The notes under the pieces: model-generated
Told to the model about the DNA's origin: nothing
Database searches by the model: none
The model's input: only the letters and a program-made list of their open reading frames with translations
Program-made: the position numbers and the translations under genes
In this document: positions 1,181 to 63,303 of the stretch, piece by piece
How positions within the stretch are numbered: the first letter of the stretch is position 1
How the letters are laid out: each line of letters starts with the position of its first letter
From: Octopus sinensis
Lineage: Eukaryota
Reading direction: 5' to 3'
NCBI RefSeq assembly: GCF_006345805.1
Contig: NC_043004.1
Span: forward strand, 54,932,001-54,996,000
Length of the DNA stretch: 64,000 nucleotides

Positions 1181-4100
1181 ATCATCATCATCATCATCGT
1201 TTAATGTCCACTTTCCATGCTAGCATGGGTTGGACGGTTCAACTGGGGTTTGGCAAGCCCGAAGGCTGCACCAGGGCAGTGTTTCTACAGCTGGATGCCC
1301 TTCCTAACGCCAACCACTCCGAGAGTGTAGTGGGTGATTTTATGTGCCACCGACACAGGTGCCAGACGAGGCTGGCAGACGGCCATGCTCGGATGGTGTT
1401 TTTTATGTGCCACCGACAGGTGCCAGACGAGGCTGGCGAACGGCCACGATCGGATGGTGTTTGTTACGTGCCCACAGCACAGAGGCCAGTCGATGCGGTA
1501 CTGGCTACGGTCACATTCGGATGGTTTTCTTATGTGCCACCGGCACCACAAGAATACAAATTCCATTGATGTTCATCTATTTTGATTTGGTTTGATTTGA
1601 TTTGATTTTTTTTTTTTTTATTTGATTTTCACTTGCCTCAACAGGTCTTCACAAGTGTCACAAGAAGGAAGGTATGCACAGGTGGACTGACTACGTCCCA
1701 GGTAGGGGCCACGGGTTATGGCTTCACTAGTCTTGCCGGGTCTTCTCACGCACAGCATACTTCCATAGGTCTCGGTCTCTAGTCATTTCCATGGTGAGGC
1801 CTAACGTTCGAAGGTCGTGCTTCACCACCTCGTCCCAGGTTTTCCTGGGTCTACCTCTTCCACGGGTTCCCTCAACTGCTAGGGATTGGCACTTTCTCAC
1901 ACACCTATCTTCATCCATTCTCGCCACATGACCATACCAGCGCAAACGTCTCTCTTGCACACCACAACTGATGCTTCTTAGGTACAACATTTCTCTCAAG
2001 GAACTAACGCTCTGTCGAGTAAGTACACTGACATTACACATCCATCGGAGAATACTGGCTTCATTCCTCATGAGCTTACGCATGTCCTCAGCAGTCACGG
2101 CCCATGTTTCACTGCCATGTAGCATGGCAGTTCGTACACATGCATCATACAGTCTGCCTTTTACTCTGAGCGAGAGGCCTTTAGTCACCAGCAGAGGTAA
2201 GAGCTCCCTAAACTTTGCCCAGGCTATTCTTATTCTAGCAGTTACACTCTCAGCGCACCCACCCCCACTACTGACTTGGTCAGCTAGATAACGGAAGCTA
2301 TCAACTACTTCTAGTTTTTCCCCCTGGAAAGTGACGGAAGTTGTTTTCTGCAGATTTTCGGAGGTCAATGCTCCCGAGCATCTGCCACATACAAAAACTA
2401 TCTTCCCAGTTAGCCTACCTTTGACATTGCTGCACCTCTTATGTGTCCATAGCTTACACTGGGTACATCTTATAGAGTTTCTACCTACACCTTTTCTACA
2501 GATCGAGCAGGGCCATCTTCCTGAAGACATTTGTGGATTGTCTACCTTTCTACTTATTAGTACTTTGGTTTTAGCTAGGTTGACTCTAAGGCCCTTTGAT
2601 TCTAAACCCTCCTTCCACACCTGGAACTTCTCCTCCAGTTCTGATAATGACTCAGCAATTAGAGCGAGGTCGTCAGCATAGAGGAGCTCCCAGGGGCAAC
2701 CTGTCTTGAATTCCTCCACAATTGCCTGGAGGACTATGATAAATAGGAGGGGGCTGAGTACTGAACCCTGGTGGACTCCAACCTCTACTTTGAATTCTTC
2801 AGTGTACATGTTGCCAATCCTAATCTTACTTACGGCATCTCTGTACATGGCTTGCACAGCCCTCACCAGCCATTCATCTATCCCTAGTTTCCTCATTGAC
2901 CACCAGATGAGGGATCGGGGGACCCTATCAAAGGCTTTCTCCATGTCAACGAAAGCCAGGTACAAGGGGCTTATCTTTGGCTAGGTATTTCTCCTGCAGC
3001 TGCCTTACCAGGAATATAGCATCAGTGGTGCTTTTCCCTGGCACGAACCCAAACTGCATCTCATCTAAACTAACTCTCTCTCTAATTAGTTGGGCTATGA
3101 CCCTCTCCATAACCTTCATTACCTGATCCAACAGCTTGATACCTCTGTAGTTATTTGTATCTGGGGCATCACCTTTACCTTTGTAGCAGTTGACTAGTAT
3201 GCTGCTACACCAGTCATTGGGTATGACTCCTTCGTGTATCACCTGGTTGACTATACGGGTGACTAGGTTATAGCCGACACTGCCAGATATTTTGAGCATC
3301 TCTGCAGTAATTCCTGATGGGCCTGGGCTTTCCCTGTCTTCATGCTTCTAATTGCCTTAGCTACCACGGAACTATCAACTCGGATAGCTGGTCCCTCTGT
3401 TGGGTCAACATTCGGCAGACTCTCTTTATCCCATTCATTTTCTTTATTCAGCAACCTTTCATAGTGGCATCTCCAAACCTCTCTCTTTGCATCCTCAGTT
3501 AGCGCAAGTGAACCATCATCCATGCAAACACACTTCTCTCCTACCACATCACGATTCTCTCTCACACACTGTCTTGCAACCCGAAATACCTCAAGTCTTT
3601 CATCCTCACGGCTCAGAACATTGGCAAATTTTTTCTTATCTGCTTCCCCTCTGGCTAAATAAACCTGTCTCCTAGCTTCCCTTCGGGCTGTCTGATACAA
3701 TTCCCTGCTACCACCGTTCTTCCAGTCCTTCCAAGCCTGTCTCTTTTGTCTAATAGCCCTGTCAACCACAGTGTTCCACCACCATGTTACTCTGGGTCGA
3801 GATGGTACTTTGCTCCATCCACAGATCTGGTCAGTGGCATCAGCAGATTGCCCCGTAGAAATCTCCAGCTGTCTTCCACAGAAATCTCCACAGAAATCTC
3901 CAGCTGTCTTCCAGCTGTCAAAGGCTTCGAGTAGTATGTCTCTAAATCTCTGTCCATTTGCAGGATCTTTAAGCTTCCAGACCCTTCTCCTCCAAGCTGG
4001 TCTTCTTTTGGGCAACCATTTAGCTCTGATCCTGAAGTCGCTAACTACTAATCTATGTTGAGGAGTACATTCTTCGCCTGGAAAGGTTTTGGCATTTATA

Positions 4101-4940
4101 ATCAGCCCTCTTTCCCTTTTTCTGGTAAGGATGTAGTCAATCTGGCTGGTGTGTCTGCCAGAACGGTAGGTGACTAGGTGAGAGGTGGGTTTCCTGAAGT
4201 TGGTATTGCAGACCATAAGGTCATTTGCATCGCAGAACTCCAGCAGCCTGGTTCCCTCCTCATTACAAGAGCCAAAACCGTAGCCTCCATGGACGCCATG
4301 GAAGCCCCCGACATGCCGTCCAACATGTCCATTGAAATCACCTGCCACGAAGAGAAGGTCACTGTCATTTGTCAACGAGGTAGTCCACAATAGGGTGTCA
4401 TAGAATTGGTCTTTTTGTCCTTCCGGTAGCCCTGGTTGAGGGGCATATGCCGAGATGATGGTAGCTGTCCTATGGTGAAGGACTAATCTAATTTTAATTA
4501 CTCTGTCACTTACTCTGACTACCTCGATTACCTTACCTACCCATTTCTCCGCAAGAAGTATACCCACGCCCCTGACCCCGTCAGTGTTCCCCGCCCAGAA
4601 AATCTTGTACCTGTGTTCCTTGCCTGTGAGGAGCCTAGCGGAACCTCCTCTCCACCTTACTTCCTGGATACAGCATACATCCACACGTCTCCGTTCAAGC
4701 AACTCTACAATCTCTCCAGACCTACCTTTCAATGTGCCAACTCTGAGGGTGTGGGAGGTGTGGGCATCTGAGACCCTGGGATGAGGGACAGCCGTGTCAT
4801 GTACCTGAAAAGAAAGCTTGCATTTGGCAGATTTCATATGGAAACACTAGACTACAACCTGCATACATTTCACAATTTTTTGCGCTATATGATCAGATAA
4901 ACCCTACATAGGTGCTAGTGGGGGTGGGGGGTAGTTAAGT
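1181..4940 (-). mobile_element. Near full-length RTE-clade LINE with 3' UTR and (GAT)n tail
   Basis: APE endonuclease motifs (CCIQEVRW, GVGILL, ISAYAPQ, VAGDFNGH, SQIDYIL, HRLVV). RT motifs (QFGFVPGKSTTDAIF, AFVDMEKAFDRV, GVHQGSVLSPLLF, LLYADDL, LRWYGHV..RGRGRPRKTW). Stop at 1727, then ~540 nt structured 3' UTR ending in (GAT)n at 1181. 5' limit taken from similarity with the second copy. Confidence 0.95.
1727..4837 (-). pseudogene. Disrupted RTE ORF (APE endonuclease, RT, PHD-like insert)
   Basis: Split into three ORF-track pieces (3263-4837, 2946-3299, 1727-2965) by two frameshifts. Lacks NVGTL in the first EN motif (present in copy 2). Small tandem duplication near 3860-3915. Confidence 0.9.
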
Positions 4941-17434: not shown

Positions 17435-18620
17435 TCATGAAGGAAAGAAGAAACAACAGAATAAGCAAATGGAAAGAAAATGGAATTACACGGCCAATTT
17501 ATGCAACAATCTGAGAATGAAGAAAGTAAAGTGTATTGGTTCTGGCTGATAGACAGAAACTTAAAATGAGTGACAGAAGCATTAATTATAGCTGTTCAGG
17601 ATCATGCTATTTGGATAAATCTGTTAAAAGCAAAGATCAACAAAGCTAGGTTTGATAGCAAATGTCTGCAGGAATGGAGACAGAAGTATTAATCATTTCT
17701 TGAATGAATGCAGAAGGCGAGTACGGGAAAAGTAGAGCTGATATGACTGTGTAGATAAAAAGGGTATATTGGGATGTTAGCTGGATGTGTGGCTTAAGGT
17801 TATGACAAAGAAAGAGTTTTTCTAGGAGAGCATGACTTCAGTTCATTCCTATGAAGTTCATTGCTGATTGTTCATAGTGTAACACTAGTCCCTAAAGCTA
17901 ACAGATCTTCTTGCAACTCCTTTCTGGTGATCATTGCATTTTTTTCGATTCTTTGCTTCATTTTTCTTAAAGATCTAGGAGAAATTTTGCGTGGTGCACC
18001 GGATCTTATTCTGTTTTCAATAGTTCCTGATGTTTTATATCTTTGGATAAATGAAGATATGGTAGAAAATGGAATGCAAAGGGTCTCTGATATTTTCCTG
18101 TAACTTTTACCTGCTTTCCACTGTTCAGTAATTAAGTTTTTCACTGAATTTGTGAGACTTAGGACCTTAGGAGACTTGCCCATGAAGACTGACCATACTA
18201 TTGATGCAAGAAGACTAGATATGATTATAAACAAACAGTGTAAGATCATAGACTTTGCAGTTCCCTATGATAACAGAAATGATGCCAAAGAAACTGAAAA
18301 AAGAAAAACTGAGAAATGTCTGGATATAGCTAGAGAGCTGAAGAGACTGTGGAAGACTAAGATAACAACTATTCCTGTGGTGATTGGTGCATTTGCACAG
18401 CACCCAAGATGCTGCCTAAGAGACTGAAAGATATTAGAATTGAGACTTGAACTGTCGACCTGCAGCAAAATAGCGTTCTGTTTTGTGTAAGAAATCCTAA
18501 AAAAGATTCTTGAGATTCGAGGTGACTTATTGTCATCAAACCTTAAGATAATAGTCCTGCTAATTAAATAAGCAAGTACTAGCTTGATGATAGTAGTAGT
18601 AGTAGTAGTAGTAGTAGTAT
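17435..18620 (+). mobile_element. R4/Dong-like non-LTR retrotransposon 3' relic, interrupted by a Tc1 fragment
   Basis: Remnants W..RNLK*VTEALIIAVQDHAI..KAKI..DSKC (CCHC region) and restriction-like endonuclease TDHTIDARRLDMIINKQCKIIDFAVPYD..EK..DIARELKRLWKTKITTIPVVIGA. Ends in a (TAG)n tail. Confidence 0.8.
17813..18156 (-). mobile_element. Internal Tc1 transposase fragment without TIRs
   Basis: Near-identical to 21302-21646 of the full Tc1 copy; encodes the paired-HTH N-terminal part. Confidence 0.9.
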
Positions 18621-18969: not shown

Positions 18970-19123
18970 ATCACATGATCGACCAGGCTATCCGATGTTG
19001 CTACACATCGCTGGTCACAATGCGTCTTGGCATTGTTTTAGCCTTCAAATGACGCCACCCTGCTGGCTAAGCGAGCAGGCCAATATATATATGTATGTGT
19101 ATGTATATATATATATATGTCTT

Positions 19124-19225
<102 letters not shown>

Positions 19226-20386
19226 AGCACTACCATTTGATGTATAATTCTGCTGAAAATTGAGAAGCTTCTCAAATAGAGGACAGGAACTAAGAGTCAA
19301 CACATATAAAAAAGAAATTACGAAATCTCCCAGGACTTTTTTTCTGTTGTATAATTTTTTAACTCTGTATTGATTATTTTATCTCATAACAAACAGTATT
19401 TGCATGATCCTTTCTGCTTTACTGCAAAGTATGTAAACACACTTTTATTAACCATCAATATATTCTGAAGATAAAACTGAAAGCATTGTTCCAAACTAAA
19501 TATAAAGGAAGAATAATGAAATAAATTTTTTTTAGGAGTGGCTGTGTGGTAAGTAGCTTGCTTACCAACCACATGGTTCTGGGTTCAGTCCCACTGCGTG
19601 GCACCTTGGGCAAGTGTCTTCTACTATAGCCTCGGGCCGACCAAAGCCTTGTGAATGGAATTATGAGACTTCAATCTACACACAGCCATTATCAATTACT
19701 ACAAAGGATTTTACCACGGATTTATATTATTTTTCAAAACGTTTAGCCCAAGTTTGTACCAATGCACATCTATATCAGTAACTTTTTTAAACAACATCTT
19801 TATCATACATTTTTAAATGACATCTCTCTCATTCCATTGACCACATGGAAATTCATCCTTTTCTCTGATGTATGGATGTATTACCTATAATAATGATTAT
19901 CAATTTTGGATTTCATTTTGAAGGGTAATACATTCATGAAACGATCGTAAGATATCTCAAACCTTTTAAATAATCATACTTTATATATTCATCTATTAAT
20001 ACAATATTATTTATATTATGGACGTATATCTTACGTGATTTTTTTGATGTAATTTTTCCTGTCTTACTTTATAATATATAATCAGTCTTATCAAATCTGT
20101 AAATACCTTTAAGGTTTGAGACATTTCCTTACCAAGAGCACTTATTCGAAATTCAGTATACTGCATTCTCATTGAATACATTTGATTAACTGGTCTGCCG
20201 TTATGTTCTGAATTCAAATTCCGCCGAGCTCGACTTTGCCTTTCATCCTTTCAGGGTTGATAAATAAAGTACCAGTTACACACTGGGGTCGATCTACTCG
20301 ACTTAATCCCTTTGTCTGTCCTTGTTTGTCTCCTCTATGTTTAGCCCCTTGTGGGCAATAAAAGATATATATATATATATTTGATT

Positions 20387-20417
<31 letters not shown>

Positions 20418-21999
20418 CAGTGGGGGAAATAAATATTCGTACATGTCAAAATTCTTTATTTAATTTCTAATGAACATAAATGGGAGATACCAATACTATA
20501 TTTACATACACATACATAAATTAAGAATATGCAAAAGAAACTAAGAAATTGTAGTAACTAAGGAATTTATATTCAATTATAAATATTTAGGGATGAAAAA
20601 AAGTATTCGTACAGAACATAAATAACTGATAATTCTGATTTAATACTTCGTAGCATAACCATTATTCAGTTCCACTTCTACCAATCTCTTCTCGTAGTTC
20701 TTAATCAATGACTTGCATGTTTCTTTAGGAATTTTTTCCCATTCTTCTTGACAAATTTTCTTCAAATCTGCAATGCACATTGGGGCTCTTGAATGAATTT
20801 TAATTTTCAAATAACGCCACGAATTTTCAATGGGGTTCAAGTCAGGTGACTGGCTTGGCTATTCTAATAATTTTATATTGTGACCGACAATCCATTTTTT
20901 GATAGACTTCATTGTGTGATTAGGGTCGTTATCCTGTTGTAAAACCCACCCTTCACAAAGCTGGAGCTTTTATATAGAGTCCCATAAACTATTGTTCAGA
21001 ATATTTTGGTACATCTCTGCATTCATTCTACCATCTATCACATGTAAATTGCCAGTACCATTTGCAGAGAAACACCCCCACACCATGATGTTGCCACCTC
21101 CAAACGTTATGGTAGGAATTGTGTTTTTCGGCAAATAGGTGGTACCATATTTTCCTCCAAACATGGCTATGCAAATTTTGTCCAAACAATTCAATTTCCG
21201 ACTCATCTGTCCATAGAACATTTCCCCAGAATGTATCAGATTTATCTTTATGTTCATAAACAAATTTTAAATGGACATCTCTGTGCCTTTTAATCAACAG
21301 CAGAGTTTTTCTAGGAGAGCATGACTTCAGTTCACTCCTATGAAGTTCATTGCTGATTGTTCGTAGTGTAACACTAGTCCCTAAAGCTAACAGATCTTCT
21401 TGCAACTCCTTTCTGGTGATCATTGCATTTTTTTTCGATTCTCTGCTTCATTTTTCTTAAAGATCTAGGAGAAATTTTGCGTGGTGCACCAGATCTTATT
21501 CTGTTTTCAATAGTTCCTGATTTTTTATATCTTTGGATAAATGAAGATATGGTAGAAAATGGAATACAAAGGGTCTCTGATATTTTCCTGTAACTTTTAC
21601 CTGCTTTCCACTGTTCAGTAATTAAGTTTTTCACTGAATTTGTGAGTTCTTTACTTTTCGTCATTATTATGATACTACTTTATGTTGTCTCAGTGCTGAA
21701 TGAAGAAGCTAGCGTTTTGACACTTAAAAATGACAACTGACAAGATTATTGGAACAAACGAGAAAGTTCTCGTAAAAAAAAATATTTTAACAGTATTTTG
21801 TAGCATAGAAAATCATAAATTTATTCTGTATGAATACTTTTTTCACCCCTAAATATATATAATTGTATATAAATTCATTAGTTACTATAATTTATTAGTT
21901 TCTTTTGCAAATATAGTATAGGTATATCCCATTTATGTTCATTAGAAATTAAATAAATAAAGAATTTTGACATGTACGAATATTTATTTTCCACCACTG
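20418..21999 (-). mobile_element. Full-length but inactivated Tc1-family (DD34E) transposon with IR/DR-type ends
   Basis: TA|CAGTGG..ATAAATATTCGTACATGTCAAAATTC TIRs at both ends, with inner direct repeats (AAAAGTATTCGTACAG ~20597-20612, mirrored ~21825-21843). Transposase [40 protein letters not shown], with 34 residues between D and E. Frameshifts and a TGG>TAG stop. Confidence 0.95.
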
Positions 22000-22009
22000 T
22001 ATATATACA

Positions 22010-22045
<36 letters not shown>

Positions 22046-22377
22046 TGTATATATAGATGTATATATATATATATAAATATATATGCACACATGCACATTT
22101 ACTAACCAGTTAGACAGCACAGATACTCTGTGTAGATACACAGCATCCACACTATAACACATGTAGTCACCTACTCATTCCCTTCATCTACGAACTCCTT
22201 TCTCTGAATGTCTTTAACATATACAATACCCTTCATTTCTCTAGTAATCTCTCAATATCACCTTTTTCTATCTCACATTCACTTCATCCTTCCTTCATTT
22301 TGTCTCTTTCTCTCTTTCTTTCCAGATGTTGTTTTCTTGAGTGGACAATCTGTGCCGCTGTCATCCCTGGCAACAAG

Positions 22378-22541
22378 ATGTCCGAAACTGGAGTTCTGGA
22401 TAATTCTTACATGTCACTGACTGTGGTGAGCTTTCTTGCGTTTATGTTTGTTTATGAATATGTCAGTCCATGGATATCCAGCTGGCTATGCCCGAAATAC
22501 AAGACCCTTACGGAAAAACAACAGATTAACTGGAACACAAG
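22378..22541 (+). CDS. TLCD4: TLC-domain membrane protein (TLCD4/TMEM56-like), first coding exon
   Basis: Reads MSETGVLDNSYMSLTVVSFLAFMFVYEYVSPWISSWLCPKYKTLTEKQQINWNTR, like the vertebrate TMEM56 N-terminus (..SFFTFQLLFYFVSYWFS..KKKIEWNSR). Polypyrimidine tract and AG acceptor at 22324-22325; phase-2 donor AG|GTAAG at 22542. Confidence 0.9.
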
Positions 22542-37972: not shown

Positions 37973-38062
37973 AGTCATCTCCAGTGTTCATGCAGTAATT
38001 ATGGGATCGCTATGTCTATACACAATAAATTATGATCCAGAAGTCAGAGATGACCCAATATG
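37973..38062 (+). CDS. TLCD4: TLCD4/TMEM56-like coding exon 2 (90 nt, phase 2-2)
   Basis: Long pyrimidine tract then tttgcAG|A GTC ATC..., encoding (R)VISSVHAVIMGSLCLYTINYDPEVRDDPI(W), matching TMEM56 [31 protein letters not shown]. Donor TG|GTATGT at 38063. Joins exon 1 in frame. Confidence 0.92.
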
Positions 38063-39884: not shown

Positions 39885-39929
39885 TAAAAGAATTTTAATA
39901 ACATCTTTCAACTCCATTTATTTACTTAT

Positions 39930-40682
39930 CAAAATCGAAATCGAATTGAACCAGCCAGGATCCCTGGTCTGGTGGTACGTAAAAAGCACTATCCGACTTG
40001 TGGCCGATGCCAGCGCCGCCTCCACTGGCTTCCGTGCCGGTGGCACGTAAAATACACCAATCTGACCGTACGACAGGCACCCATGCCAACCCCCTTGCTT
40101 GCGAAGACATGTTGCGGCAATCAAAATCGAAATCGAATTGAACCAGCCAGGATCCCTGGTCTGGTGGTACATAAAAAGCACTATCCGACTCGTGGCCGAT
40201 GCCAGCGCCGCCTCCACTGGCTTCCGTGCCGGTGGCACGTAAAATACACCAATCTGACCGTACGACAGGCACCCATGCCAACCCCCTTGCTTGCGAAGAC
40301 ATGTTGGGGCAAGCGAAATCGAAATCGAATTGAACCAGCCAGGATCCCTGGTCTGGTGGTACATAAAAAGCACTATCCGACTCGTGGCCGATGCCAGCAC
40401 CGCCTCGTCTGGCTTCCGTGCCGGTGGCACATAAAATACACCAATCCGACCGTGGCCGTTGCCAGCCTCGCCTGGCACCTGTGCAGGTGGCACGTAAAAA
40501 GCACCCACTACACTCATGGAGTGGTTGGCGTTAGGAAGGGCATCCAGCTGTAGAAACACTGCCAGATAAGACTGGAGCCTGGTGCAGCCTTCTGGCTTCC
40601 CAGATCCCCGGTCGAACCGTCCAACCCATGCTAGCATGGAGAACGGACGTTAAACGATGATGATGATGATGATGATGATGAT
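39930..40682 (+). repeat. RTE 3'-UTR-derived insertion containing a 192-bp tandem repeat
   Basis: AATTGAACCAGCCAGGATCCC recurs at 39944, 40136 and 40328. Ends in the family (GAT)n tail. Confidence 0.9.
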
Positions 40683-41726
40683 ATATATATTATTAGTATT
40701 ATTATTAAACCTTTCTTTTGAGATATATGGGCTGTATCAGAGAATTGCTTGGAATGAGTCTGAGATGAATGATAATTGAAGAGGTAAACTCAGAAAAAAG
40801 TTTAGGTCAATCAGCAAATACCCAAACGGAAAACAGAAGTAAAATTTTTTAAATATTTAAAAAAAATACATATACATTAATACATATCAATACAAATCTA
40901 TATATATATAAGCATAACATATAAATATATAAATAAAAATATAAATTAAAAAAACGTAAAAATATGTGAGGTGTAAATATGGTGACTGCAAATGAAAGAG
41001 AACTCATTAACAGAAATAGAAATAGAGATTGGAAATAAAATTATAAACAACCTAAAAAAAGATACAACAGATATAAATTATATAAGATAGCAGTAGGAAG
41101 GTGTTTAGCAAATAACTACATGACTAGAACAAATCAAAAATTTACAATTAAGAATTAAGGATAAAGTCCCTTTATTTGAGGAAGTTCATTCAATGGCCAT
41201 TTCTGGAGTACATTTTCAGTAAGGTAAAAAGTTCAAAAGTTTAACTCATCCTTGTATGTAATGTCCCCCTTATCAAGAAGACATCCTCCATAACGAATTA
41301 CATCACAAAATCCTTTAATAGCATGTGCACATTGTACTTCCAAACATATATAGACCCCCACCCCATACACATGTACATTACACACCACATGCTAACATAA
41401 AACCCCCTACAACCTTATCCTTTACAGAAAGAAAACAGACCAACAAACACAGCTATATATGCCTACACCCCTGGAAAAAATTATGCATATGGTACCACTA
41501 CACATATCATACCCCAACACCACAGGAACACCACATTTAATAATGCACACTTTTCCCACAAACACATCAAGATAACTCTTACCAAGATAACATCATACCC
41601 AACCCAAGGAAATAACTCCTAACCTAATCACCTGGCCCTTTTTGTTTCACCACCTTTTTCACAGCAGCCGCTGACTAGCTATGTTAATCCACCATCAACA
41701 ATAGGGAGCAGTTGCCATATTCCTTT

Positions 41727-41832
41727 CCATATTGGCTAACTCTGATGAGTATAAGGTTATATAATTGGATTGTTGCCTTGCACTCCATTGTATTCCTTGT
41801 ACGAAACCACTTGGTAAGATCAGCCATGATGG
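41727..41832 (+). ncRNA. Candidate type I hammerhead ribozyme with complete catalytic core
   Basis: CTGATGA 41742-41748; stem II GTATAAGG/CCTTGTAC; GAAA 41803-41806; stem III ACCA-CT-TGGT; GUA cleavage triplet (after 41816); stem I CCAT.TGGCT..CT / AG..AGCCA.ATGG. Confidence 0.8.
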
Positions 41833-41943
41833 ATACATTATACTATATATTTTGGATAATATACCCACTCTATTGACAGATATACGAGTGCATCCTTTCC
41901 CTGATTTATGGTCTCTTAGACGACTTATGCACATATGTGTATA

Positions 41944-43217
41944 TCGGGTCAGCCTATAAATAATGCATTATTTTCAATTGCTTGAACTAAAAGTTGGAGA
42001 GGGATAGGATAACCACCTGCATTAACTTGCTATAAAAGCTGGTAGTTACTTTTCACTTTGGGCTTATTCTTAGTGCAAGATTTAAAGAGTGCAGTTCGAT
42101 TTTAACAGTTATTTTTTCAAAGCTATAATGGAAGTGACAAAGGAGCATATTTAGCATATTTTGCTTTATGAGTTCAATAAAGGCAACAACACAAAGGAAA
42201 GTGTGAGGAATATTAATGCAGTATATGGGGCTCTGACAATAAGCATAAACCAGTGTCAATGGTGGTTCCAGAAATTCTGAGCCGGAAACTACAGTCTCGA
42301 AAACAAGCCTCATCCTGGAAGTTCTATAGAGCTTTGCAAGGACATCCTGCATACCCTGGTGGAACAAAATCCCATTGTAACTGTTGAGGAGCTAGCAGAG
42401 AAGCTTCGATTTTGTCATTCAACCATTCATTGACATCTGCGTGCCATGGAAAAAGTCAGCAAATTGGGTCAATGATTTCCTCACAAACTTTCCAAGTCTA
42501 ATCATGTGCAGAGTATGAATGTGTACTCTTCTTTGCTCTCACATCACATGAATGAACCTTTTTTTGGATCGAGTCGTGACTGGTGACTAGAAATGGGTTC
42601 TCCATAAAGTGTCAAGCACCAAAGTCAGTGGATAGGGAAAGGAGAAACACTCCAGACTAAGGAAGGTCTGCATCCATGTAAGGTGTTGTCATCTGTTTGG
42701 TGGAATATGAAAGGTTTAATACACTTTGAATTTCTAAACCCAAACAAAACAATAACAAATGAGATCTACTGTGAGCAGCTTGAGCAGCTTAAATCGGTGC
42801 TAAAAGGAAAATGACCATCTTCAGTTTCAAGATGAAAGGTGTTCTTCAATGAGAATAATGCTTGACCACATACAGTAAAGATGACATTCTAAAGGCTGGA
42901 GTAGTTTGAATGGGAAACAATTCCCCATCACCATATTTGCTGGACATTGCCCCATCTGATTATTATTTATTCCTCAATTTTCAAAACCATTTGGATAGAA
43001 AATAATAAATTCTGTAGATGAGGTCAGAACAGTACTGGAAGAGTATTTTTCGTTATGGACAAGTGAATTTTGTAAGAGAGGCTTTGCAAGTCTACCAGAT
43101 AAAATGTAAGAGCATTGTAGAAAATTAAGGAGAGTATATTTTAGATTAAAAAAGAACTTTGTTTAGCTTAGCTTTGAAAAATAAAAGAAGTATAAAAAAC
43201 GCATTATTTATGGGACG

Positions 43218-43223
<6 letters not shown>
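41944..43223 (+). mobile_element. Decayed full-length mariner (Mos1/Hsmar1-like) element
   Basis: TIRs TCGGGTCAGCCTATAAATAATGCATT / AACGCATTATTTATGGGACGACCCTA with TA TSD. Remnants IMLYEFNKG..PHKL..FLDRVVTGD*KWV..LHP.KV..VWWNMKG..(HD)NA*PH, with many stops. Confidence 0.9.
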
Positions 43224-43269
<46 letters not shown>

Positions 43270-60262: not shown

Positions 60263-60362
60263 NNNNNNNNNNNNNNNNNNNNNNNNNNNNNNNNNNNNNN
60301 NNNNNNNNNNNNNNNNNNNNNNNNNNNNNNNNNNNNNNNNNNNNNNNNNNNNNNNNNNNNNN
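60263..60362. other. Assembly gap (100 N)
   Basis: Exactly 100 N. The left edge is a truncated SINE (60135-60262). Confidence 0.99.
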
Positions 60363-63181: not shown

Positions 63182-63303
63182 AAACAATGATAATTTACAG
63201 AAAACAGGTATGGTATTCCATGCTTTATAGAACATACAAACCAAATGTACCTTCTATAAAGCATTGAAAACCGTACCTGTTTTCTGTAAATTATTATTGC
63301 TTT
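63182..63303. repeat. ~50-bp-arm hairpin with 19-nt loop
   Basis: ATAATTTACAGAAAACAGGTATGGTATTCCATGCTTTATAGAA pairs with TTCTATAAAGCATTGAAAACCGTACCTGTTTTCTGTAAATTAT. Confidence 0.85.

Follow-up and report, generated by a model that had tools for sequence, protein, structure and literature searches.

Hammerhead ribozymes are common in animal genomes, where they lie mostly within retroelements, and one more is in itself unsurprising. A mussel has about 5000 hammerhead copies (PMC7229834), and Schistosoma has thousands (PMC4209133). The canonical type I hammerheads of metazoans (Schistosoma Sm-alpha, newt satellite 2 and the non-LTR retrozymes) have an open helix I and capped helices II and III. 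Their helix I is 6 bp long and their helix II 4 bp, the loops of the two helices are conserved and interact (PMC4209133), and the motifs are found in tandem repeats of 170-400 bp (PMC4209133, PMC7229834). A helix III made of two pairs and a tetraloop has been described as typical of invertebrate hammerheads (PMC7229834). The hammerheads of Penelope-like elements (PLEs) have no recognisable tertiary contacts and are mostly solitary, being derived from truncated elements (PMC4209133). Octopus genomes contain PLEs (PMC13282606, PMC8557442), which in Octopus vulgaris are recognised as a class of repeats (PMC13282606). The HH9 (RECK) and HH10 (CTCL/C10orf118) hammerheads are ultraconserved in amniotes, resemble those of Schistosoma with their loop contacts, and have Rfam families of their own (PMC6155905). 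No paper devoted to hammerheads in cephalopods was found in the literature searched.

We analysed a 64,000-nucleotide stretch of Octopus sinensis DNA (hereafter the window) for which the first-pass annotation had proposed a complete extended type I hammerhead. Reading of the sequence from 41600 to 41960 showed that the sequence and pairing features of a hammerhead are all present in a stretch of 106 bases on the + strand (41727-41832), and it bore out the proposed list of elements with the exception of the fourth pair of helix III. The 5' part of the catalytic core, C3 U4 G5 A6 U7 G8 A9 (CUGAUGA), is located at 41742-41748 (+), base for base as claimed. The window contains five CTGATGA sites on the + strand and eight on the - strand, and only the one at 41742 is in a hammerhead context. 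The 3' part of the core, G12 A13 A14 A15.1 (GAAA), is located at 41803-41806 (+), U16.1 is at 41815 and A17 is at 41816, again as annotated. The invariant core of the hammerhead class (C3 U4 G5 A6 N7 G8 A9, G12 A13 A14, the A15.1-U16.1 pair and an H17 that is not a guanine) is thus complete.

The helix II arm (41749-41802, +) is 54 nt long and is made of 8 bp, a UU/U internal loop and an imperfect distal hairpin. Its 8 bp, GUAUAAGG (41749-41756) paired with CCUUGUAC (41795-41802), include one U.G wobble and start from the canonical G10.1-C11.1 pair, which adjoins the core; length and pair both agree with the annotation, and the pair probabilities of the arm range from 0.84 to 1.0 in the ensemble. 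A helix III of 4 bp (ACCA/UGGU) had been proposed. The helix is there, but it is a hairpin of 3 bp (A15.1-U16.1, C15.2-G16.2 and a C-G pair) capped by an ACUU tetraloop (41806-41815, +), with pair probabilities of 0.86-0.93; the fourth pair (A41809-U41812) cannot form because the loop left would be of only 2 nt. According to the standard hammerhead numbering, the predicted scissile bond (GUA/A) lies between A17 and N1.1 (41816-41817, +), the position given by the annotation for a cut after 41816, and it is from this numbering that cleavage at A41816/A41817 is predicted.

Helix I is interrupted on both strands. Its 5' strand (41727-41741, +) consists of CCAU (41727-41730), an AU loop, UGGCU (41733-41737), AA and CU (41740-41741, positions 2.2 and 2.1), and its 3' strand (41817-41832, +) of AG (positions 1.1 and 1.2), AUC, AGCCA (41822-41826), UG and AUGG (41829-41832). 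The pairings CU/AG (41740-41741 with 41817-41818), UGGCU/AGCCA (41733-41737 with 41822-41826) and CCAU/AUGG (41727-41730 with 41829-41832), separated by internal loops, are those that had been annotated. Read generously, the helix is nearly continuous, as A41738-U41820 can pair between an A.A mismatch and the bulged C41821.

Unconstrained folding with ViennaRNA gave a minimum free energy (MFE) structure with the matching three-way junction, at -33.5 kcal/mol (z = -3.77), and only 1 of 200 dinucleotide shuffles was equally stable. The MFE structure and the ensemble both contained the middle and distal parts of helix I, helix II and helix III, when the motif was folded alone and when it was folded with flanks of 50-100 nt, and the distal and middle pairs of helix I had probabilities of 0.90-1.0. 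The three-helix junction is of type I in the MFE structure and in the ensemble, with weak helix I pairs next to the core (3-4%). These proximal pairs, U41741-A41817 and C41740-G41818, had probabilities of only 0.03-0.04, and a competing register shifted by two bases, in which C3 and U4 pair with G1.2 and A1.1, accounted for about 50% of the ensemble. The hammerhead-competent fold was at -31.4 kcal/mol, 2.1 kcal/mol above the MFE of -33.5 kcal/mol. When the flanks were lengthened to 200 nt, other pairings took the place of helices I and III in the prediction. An upstream segment of 21 nt (41408-41428) is 76% complementary to 41741-41761, a stretch that runs from U2.1 through the CUGAUGA core and across the 5' side of helix II; this upstream segment could in principle compete with folding of the ribozyme, and the match may well be due to chance.

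Such folding results would suit a hammerhead descendant that is catalytically dead or misfolded and persists as an inert fossil, an explanation that we consider unlikely. The proximal helix I pairs (0.03-0.04, as against about 0.5 for the shifted register), the loss of helices I and III with 200-nt flanks and the complementarity of 41408-41428 to 41741-41761 all point in its direction, and for single PLE-type hammerheads in monomeric form self-cleavage was undetectable in vitro (PMC4209133). However, all core positions are intact, the gap of 2.1 kcal/mol to the active fold could be bridged by tertiary structure and Mg2+, and helix III is here a stable monomeric hairpin of 3 bp, whereas the minimal motifs of PLEs need dimers. 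Minimal hammerheads can cleave with a helix I of only about three base pairs, which also argues against an inert fossil.

Chance expectation was estimated with a type I descriptor (CUGANGA, helix II, GAAA, a helix III opening with an A-U pair, H17 and a helix I of at least 2 bp), whose sole match on both strands of the 64-kb window was the motif at 41727-41832; the reversed window sequence gave no match. The null model consisted of 1500 order-2 Markov windows, in which the loosest descriptor gave 0.56 matches per window and a helix II of at least 8 bp reduced this to 0.0013 per window. The G10.1-C11.1 and C15.2-G16.2 pairs occurred together in only 0.7% of the null matches, and U7 in 27%. The product of these rates gives about 2.5e-6 type I matches this good per 64-kb window. 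Against equally spaced pairs of 20-nt flanks from the real window, the duplex of distal helix I (-15.6 kcal/mol) was exceptional (P = 0.005), as was the helix II arm folded alone (-19.0 kcal/mol) against real 54-mers (P = 0.014). Multiplication of 2.5e-6 by the 0.005 of distal helix I brings the expectation to roughly 1e-8 per window. Hairpins of at least 8 bp were 2.2 times as frequent in the real window as in the Markov null, which is a minor correction. For an octopus genome of about 2.7 Gb, fewer than about 0.001 chance matches this good are expected, and far fewer than one even when the flexibility of the criteria is generously allowed for.

We treat the motif as real in the evolutionary sense and its origin by chance as unlikely, because the chance rate is far below the frequency of hammerhead retroelements in invertebrates. 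We regard as very improbable the alternative of a look-alike, an AT-rich imperfect palindrome that carries CUGAUGA and GAAA at an internal loop and has no ribozyme ancestry. Relaxed motif searches do yield mostly false positives (PMC6155905), the Rfam covariance models did not recognise the motif, no second copy in the window and no relative in metagenome pattern scans was found, and real DNA is 2.2 times richer in hairpins than the Markov null. Nevertheless, a look-alike would have to arise at about 2.5e-6 per 64-kb window, or roughly 1e-8 with distal helix I, and hammerhead retroelements of invertebrates are far commoner than that (PMC7229834, PMC4209133).

The Rfam families Hammerhead_1, Hammerhead_II, Hammerhead_3, HH9 and HH10 gave no match at the gathering threshold on 131 nt, on 551 nt or on the 64 kb of the window. 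Nor did the Rfam hammerhead families give a match at E<=10 on the 131-nt slice, the 551 nt or the whole window; the check by covariance models put forward in the first-pass annotation was negative. This silence must be due in part to the 54-nt helix II arm, for which a covariance model would lose many bits; a further implication is that the loops and helices I and III are unlike those of the curated Rfam families. It lowers the likelihood of membership of these families and not of the hammerhead class. A motif with a perfect core and junction that is yet missed by Rfam provides a test case for overlooked atypical hammerheads, i.e. those with a long helix II and an interrupted helix I.

The sub-threshold Rfam matches in the window were to dozens of microRNAs (mir-297, mir-466, mir-1277, mir-4716 and MIR9555) on both strands. 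They arise from (TA)n, (CA)n and (GA)n microsatellites (19112-19230, 63190-63294, 22021-22091 and many others), and are low-complexity artefacts and not genes.

Searches for relatives of the motif were negative. A BLAST of 41000-42600 against the window revealed no further copy and only the terminal repeats of a mariner element, and no second hammerhead motif with a real helix II was found in the window. When 41000-41932 was compared by BLAST with a 21-kb piece of O. vulgaris chromosome OX597814.1, nothing rose above noise. Metagenome pattern scans with the full helix II sequence, or with junction-proximal bases alone, gave no match, and an exact-product look-up of the three ORFs overlapping the motif returned no record.

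The explanation that we favour, with a confidence only a little above even, is that of a genuine solitary type I hammerhead, probably a retroelement passenger, with slow predicted cleavage. A genuine hammerhead is supported by the complete invariant core, the G10.1-C11.1 and C15.2-G16.2 pairs and the GUA cleavage triplet. Upon transcription of the + strand, helix II (54 nt) and helix III, both local hairpins, would fold first, and the 3' strand of helix I would then close the three-way junction around the 11 invariant bases of the core. The 2'-OH of A41816 would attack the neighbouring phosphate, and the products would carry a 2',3'-cyclic phosphate and, at A41817, a 5'-OH. Kinetics would be slow and of the minimal type, with a need for more Mg2+ than that of the fast natural hammerheads (compare PMC3088659, PMC6155905). 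Slow cleavage is expected because the proximal pairs of helix I are weak, the C3/U4 register competes and the canonical loop contact is missing.

This genuine hammerhead would have originated as a solitary remnant of a hammerhead-carrying retroelement of the Penelope-like or retrozyme type, and would be a passenger of the intron that has no function for its host. We infer the retroelement origin, the cleavage, its rate and the absence of function. A solitary retroelement remnant is the most likely and most economical origin, given the likeness of the motif to PLE hammerheads; against it, the window showed no further copy, no tandem repeat over the motif and, in six frames of 40700-41932, no PLE reverse transcriptase (RT) or GIY-YIG domain, and the 21 kb of O. 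vulgaris gave no match. Few old relics evolving neutrally would be expected to retain an intact core, which counts against the passenger origin.

The first-pass annotation had derived the motif from a Penelope-like terminal repeat and had remarked that no PLE ORF was evident nearby. The remark held, a Pfam scan of the six frames of 40700-41932 having found no Penelope-like RT or GIY-YIG domain. The derivation found no backing in the window, where neither a PLE domain nor a second terminal repeat or further copy was found. PLE hammerheads are located in a pseudo-LTR next to an RT/GIY-YIG ORF and often have a second copy within kilobases, and no such arrangement is seen in the window. A short, 5'-truncated PLE remnant at the motif is possible. 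The supplement of the Naiad/PLE paper reportedly lists 'HHR_half_core' cases, in which the halves of the core are 35-50 nt apart.

The motif region is single-copy in the window and lies between a SINE/AT-rich tract and a mariner. The latter is a degenerate element of the Mos1 type (41933-43234, +; HTH_48, E = 1.5e-14; Transposase_1, E = 5e-19) whose transposase frame contains many stops and whose terminal inverted repeats (41933-41973 and 43234-43194) are about 41 nt long and 80% identical. Three other assignments of the motif were rejected. It is not part of the mariner at 41933-43234, as the terminal repeat starts 100 bp beyond the end of the motif. Nor is it a SINE of the Sm-alpha type, as a reading by eye detected no pol III A and B boxes, tail or repeats. 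Finally, it is not a plain long palindrome, as the presence of the core bases at the internal loop would be a coincidence of about 1e-7 (a rough estimate and not a computed value).

No tandem repeat was found over 41000-42600. The nearest tandem array (39928-40453) consists of 2.7 copies of a 192-bp unit with 97% identity and is unrelated to the motif; it passes into a SINE-like sequence with a terminal (GAT)9 stretch (40656-40682), and this (GAT)9-tailed SINE family has many further copies in the window and is also present in O. vulgaris. A non-LTR retrotransposon (1730-4846, -) has long open frames, one of 527 aa for an endonuclease (Exo_endo_phos) and one of 417 aa for an RT. The product of the RT ORF (1730-2980, -) is 85% and 81% identical to proteins of O. 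bimaculoides and O. vulgaris, respectively, and a copy on O. vulgaris OX597814.1 shares 86% DNA identity with the element, a LINE copy that may be relatively young. The window and the 21-kb piece of O. vulgaris OX597814.1 have LINE and SINE families in common, with identities of 81-90%. Remnants of a Tc1-type transposase are present at 20643-21679 (-), with HTH_Tnp_Tc3_2 and the C-terminus of DDE_3 at 20643-21447, and a second partial Tc1-type copy at 17875-18264 (-), recognised from its translation only, shares the N-terminal peptide.

The motif had been placed in sense orientation in intron 2 of TLCD4. Two well-formed exons of a TLC-domain (TLCD4-like) gene are present upstream on the + strand, exon 1 (22378-22541) running from an ATG to an AG/GTAAGA donor and exon 2 (37973-38062) from a cag acceptor to a GTATGT donor, and the motif is in sense orientation 3.7 kb downstream of exon 2 (37973-38062). 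Both + strand exons resemble the beginning of the Pfam TLC domain only weakly, below the cut-off (E = 0.003). No later exon was found on the + strand of the window by tblastn with an approximate TLCD4 sequence as the query. The exons that match positions 98-197 of the TLC profile and include the stop codon (63404-63327 and 62235-61927; E = 1e-18) are on the - strand, and an assembly gap of 100 N (60263-60362) separates them from the + strand exons. The part matching profile positions 32-97 is absent from the window, and protein searches with the peptides of the TLC exons found nothing. This split suggests one gene, the 3' contig of which is misoriented or truly inverted, rather than two genes. 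Thus the upstream exons bear out the annotated location, the 3' TLC exons on the - strand beyond the gap do not, and a location in intron 2 in sense orientation is plausible.

The position in the gene bears on another explanation, which we hold to be distinctly unlikely, namely that the motif is a domesticated intronic ribozyme under selection that cuts the TLCD4-like pre-mRNA and thereby affects splicing, intron turnover or premature termination, a role like that suggested for HH9 and HH10. Conserved intronic hammerheads of amniotes provide a precedent (PMC6155905). The sense orientation and the position 3.7 kb past exon 2, the presence of only one copy in the window, not embedded in any recognisable transposon body, and the perfect core and stems, which an old neutral relic would tend to lose, are consistent with domestication. 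It is opposed by the lack of the loop-loop contacts that speed natural hammerheads at cellular Mg2+, by the transposon-crowded surroundings, in which a mariner begins 100 bp away, and by the location of the 3' exons of the TLC gene on the opposite strand of the assembly.

Conservation among octopods would extend domesticated intronic ribozymes beyond amniotes, and would make the locus a tractable system for the effects of co-transcriptional self-cleavage on pre-mRNA. The fullest form of this proposal is a conserved, host-domesticated intronic hammerhead of cephalopods in which the unusually long arm of helix II and the interrupted helix I make a novel contact with each other, and which cuts the nascent TLCD4-like pre-mRNA and so tunes splicing or premature termination. 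We give it little credence; if true, it would be an invertebrate counterpart of HH9/HH10 missed by current covariance models. A non-canonical contact between the UU/U loop of helix II and the AU/UG loop of helix I, which are at a similar distance from the core, is conceivable as a purely structural conjecture.

Comparison of the octopus motif with HH9 and HH10 showed that all three are of type I and lie in sense orientation within a long intron of a protein-coding gene. The octopus motif differs from them by its octopod host, its TLC-domain gene and its atypical architecture; it is not in a RECK or CTCL intron and was matched by neither the HH9 nor the HH10 model. The amniote HH9/HH10 framing of the first-pass annotation is therefore misplaced for a window of octopod DNA.

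Comparison with the canonical metazoan type I hammerheads showed that the topology is shared, that the catalytic core is identical and that the G10.1-C11.1 and C15.2-G16.2 pairs are likewise present in the octopus motif. However, helix I of the octopus motif is first interrupted after 2 bp, and helix II has 8 bp and a distal arm of 38 nt, as against the canonical 6 and 4 bp. The contact between loops 1 and 2, or else a pseudoknot, that marks extended hammerheads (PMC4209133, PMC3088659) is not recognised in it, and the 'extended' architecture of tertiary contacts that had been annotated does not agree with these helix lengths. Unlike the canonical motifs, the octopus motif is not in a tandem repeat, and it differs in this from the non-LTR retrozymes, in which each of the tandem repeats of about 170-400 bp carries a type I hammerhead.

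On its sequence and predicted topology, the octopus motif is of the hammerhead class and outside all of the curated Rfam families tested. It has the short, tetraloop-capped helix III of invertebrate hammerheads (PMC7229834). The helix III of PLE minimal hammerheads is absent or is small and palindromic, so that dimers are needed, whereas that of the octopus motif is a non-palindromic hairpin of 3 bp. The larger helix II (7-8 bp) and the short helix I (as little as 2 bp in D. virilis) of PLE hammerheads are as in the octopus motif (PMC4209133).
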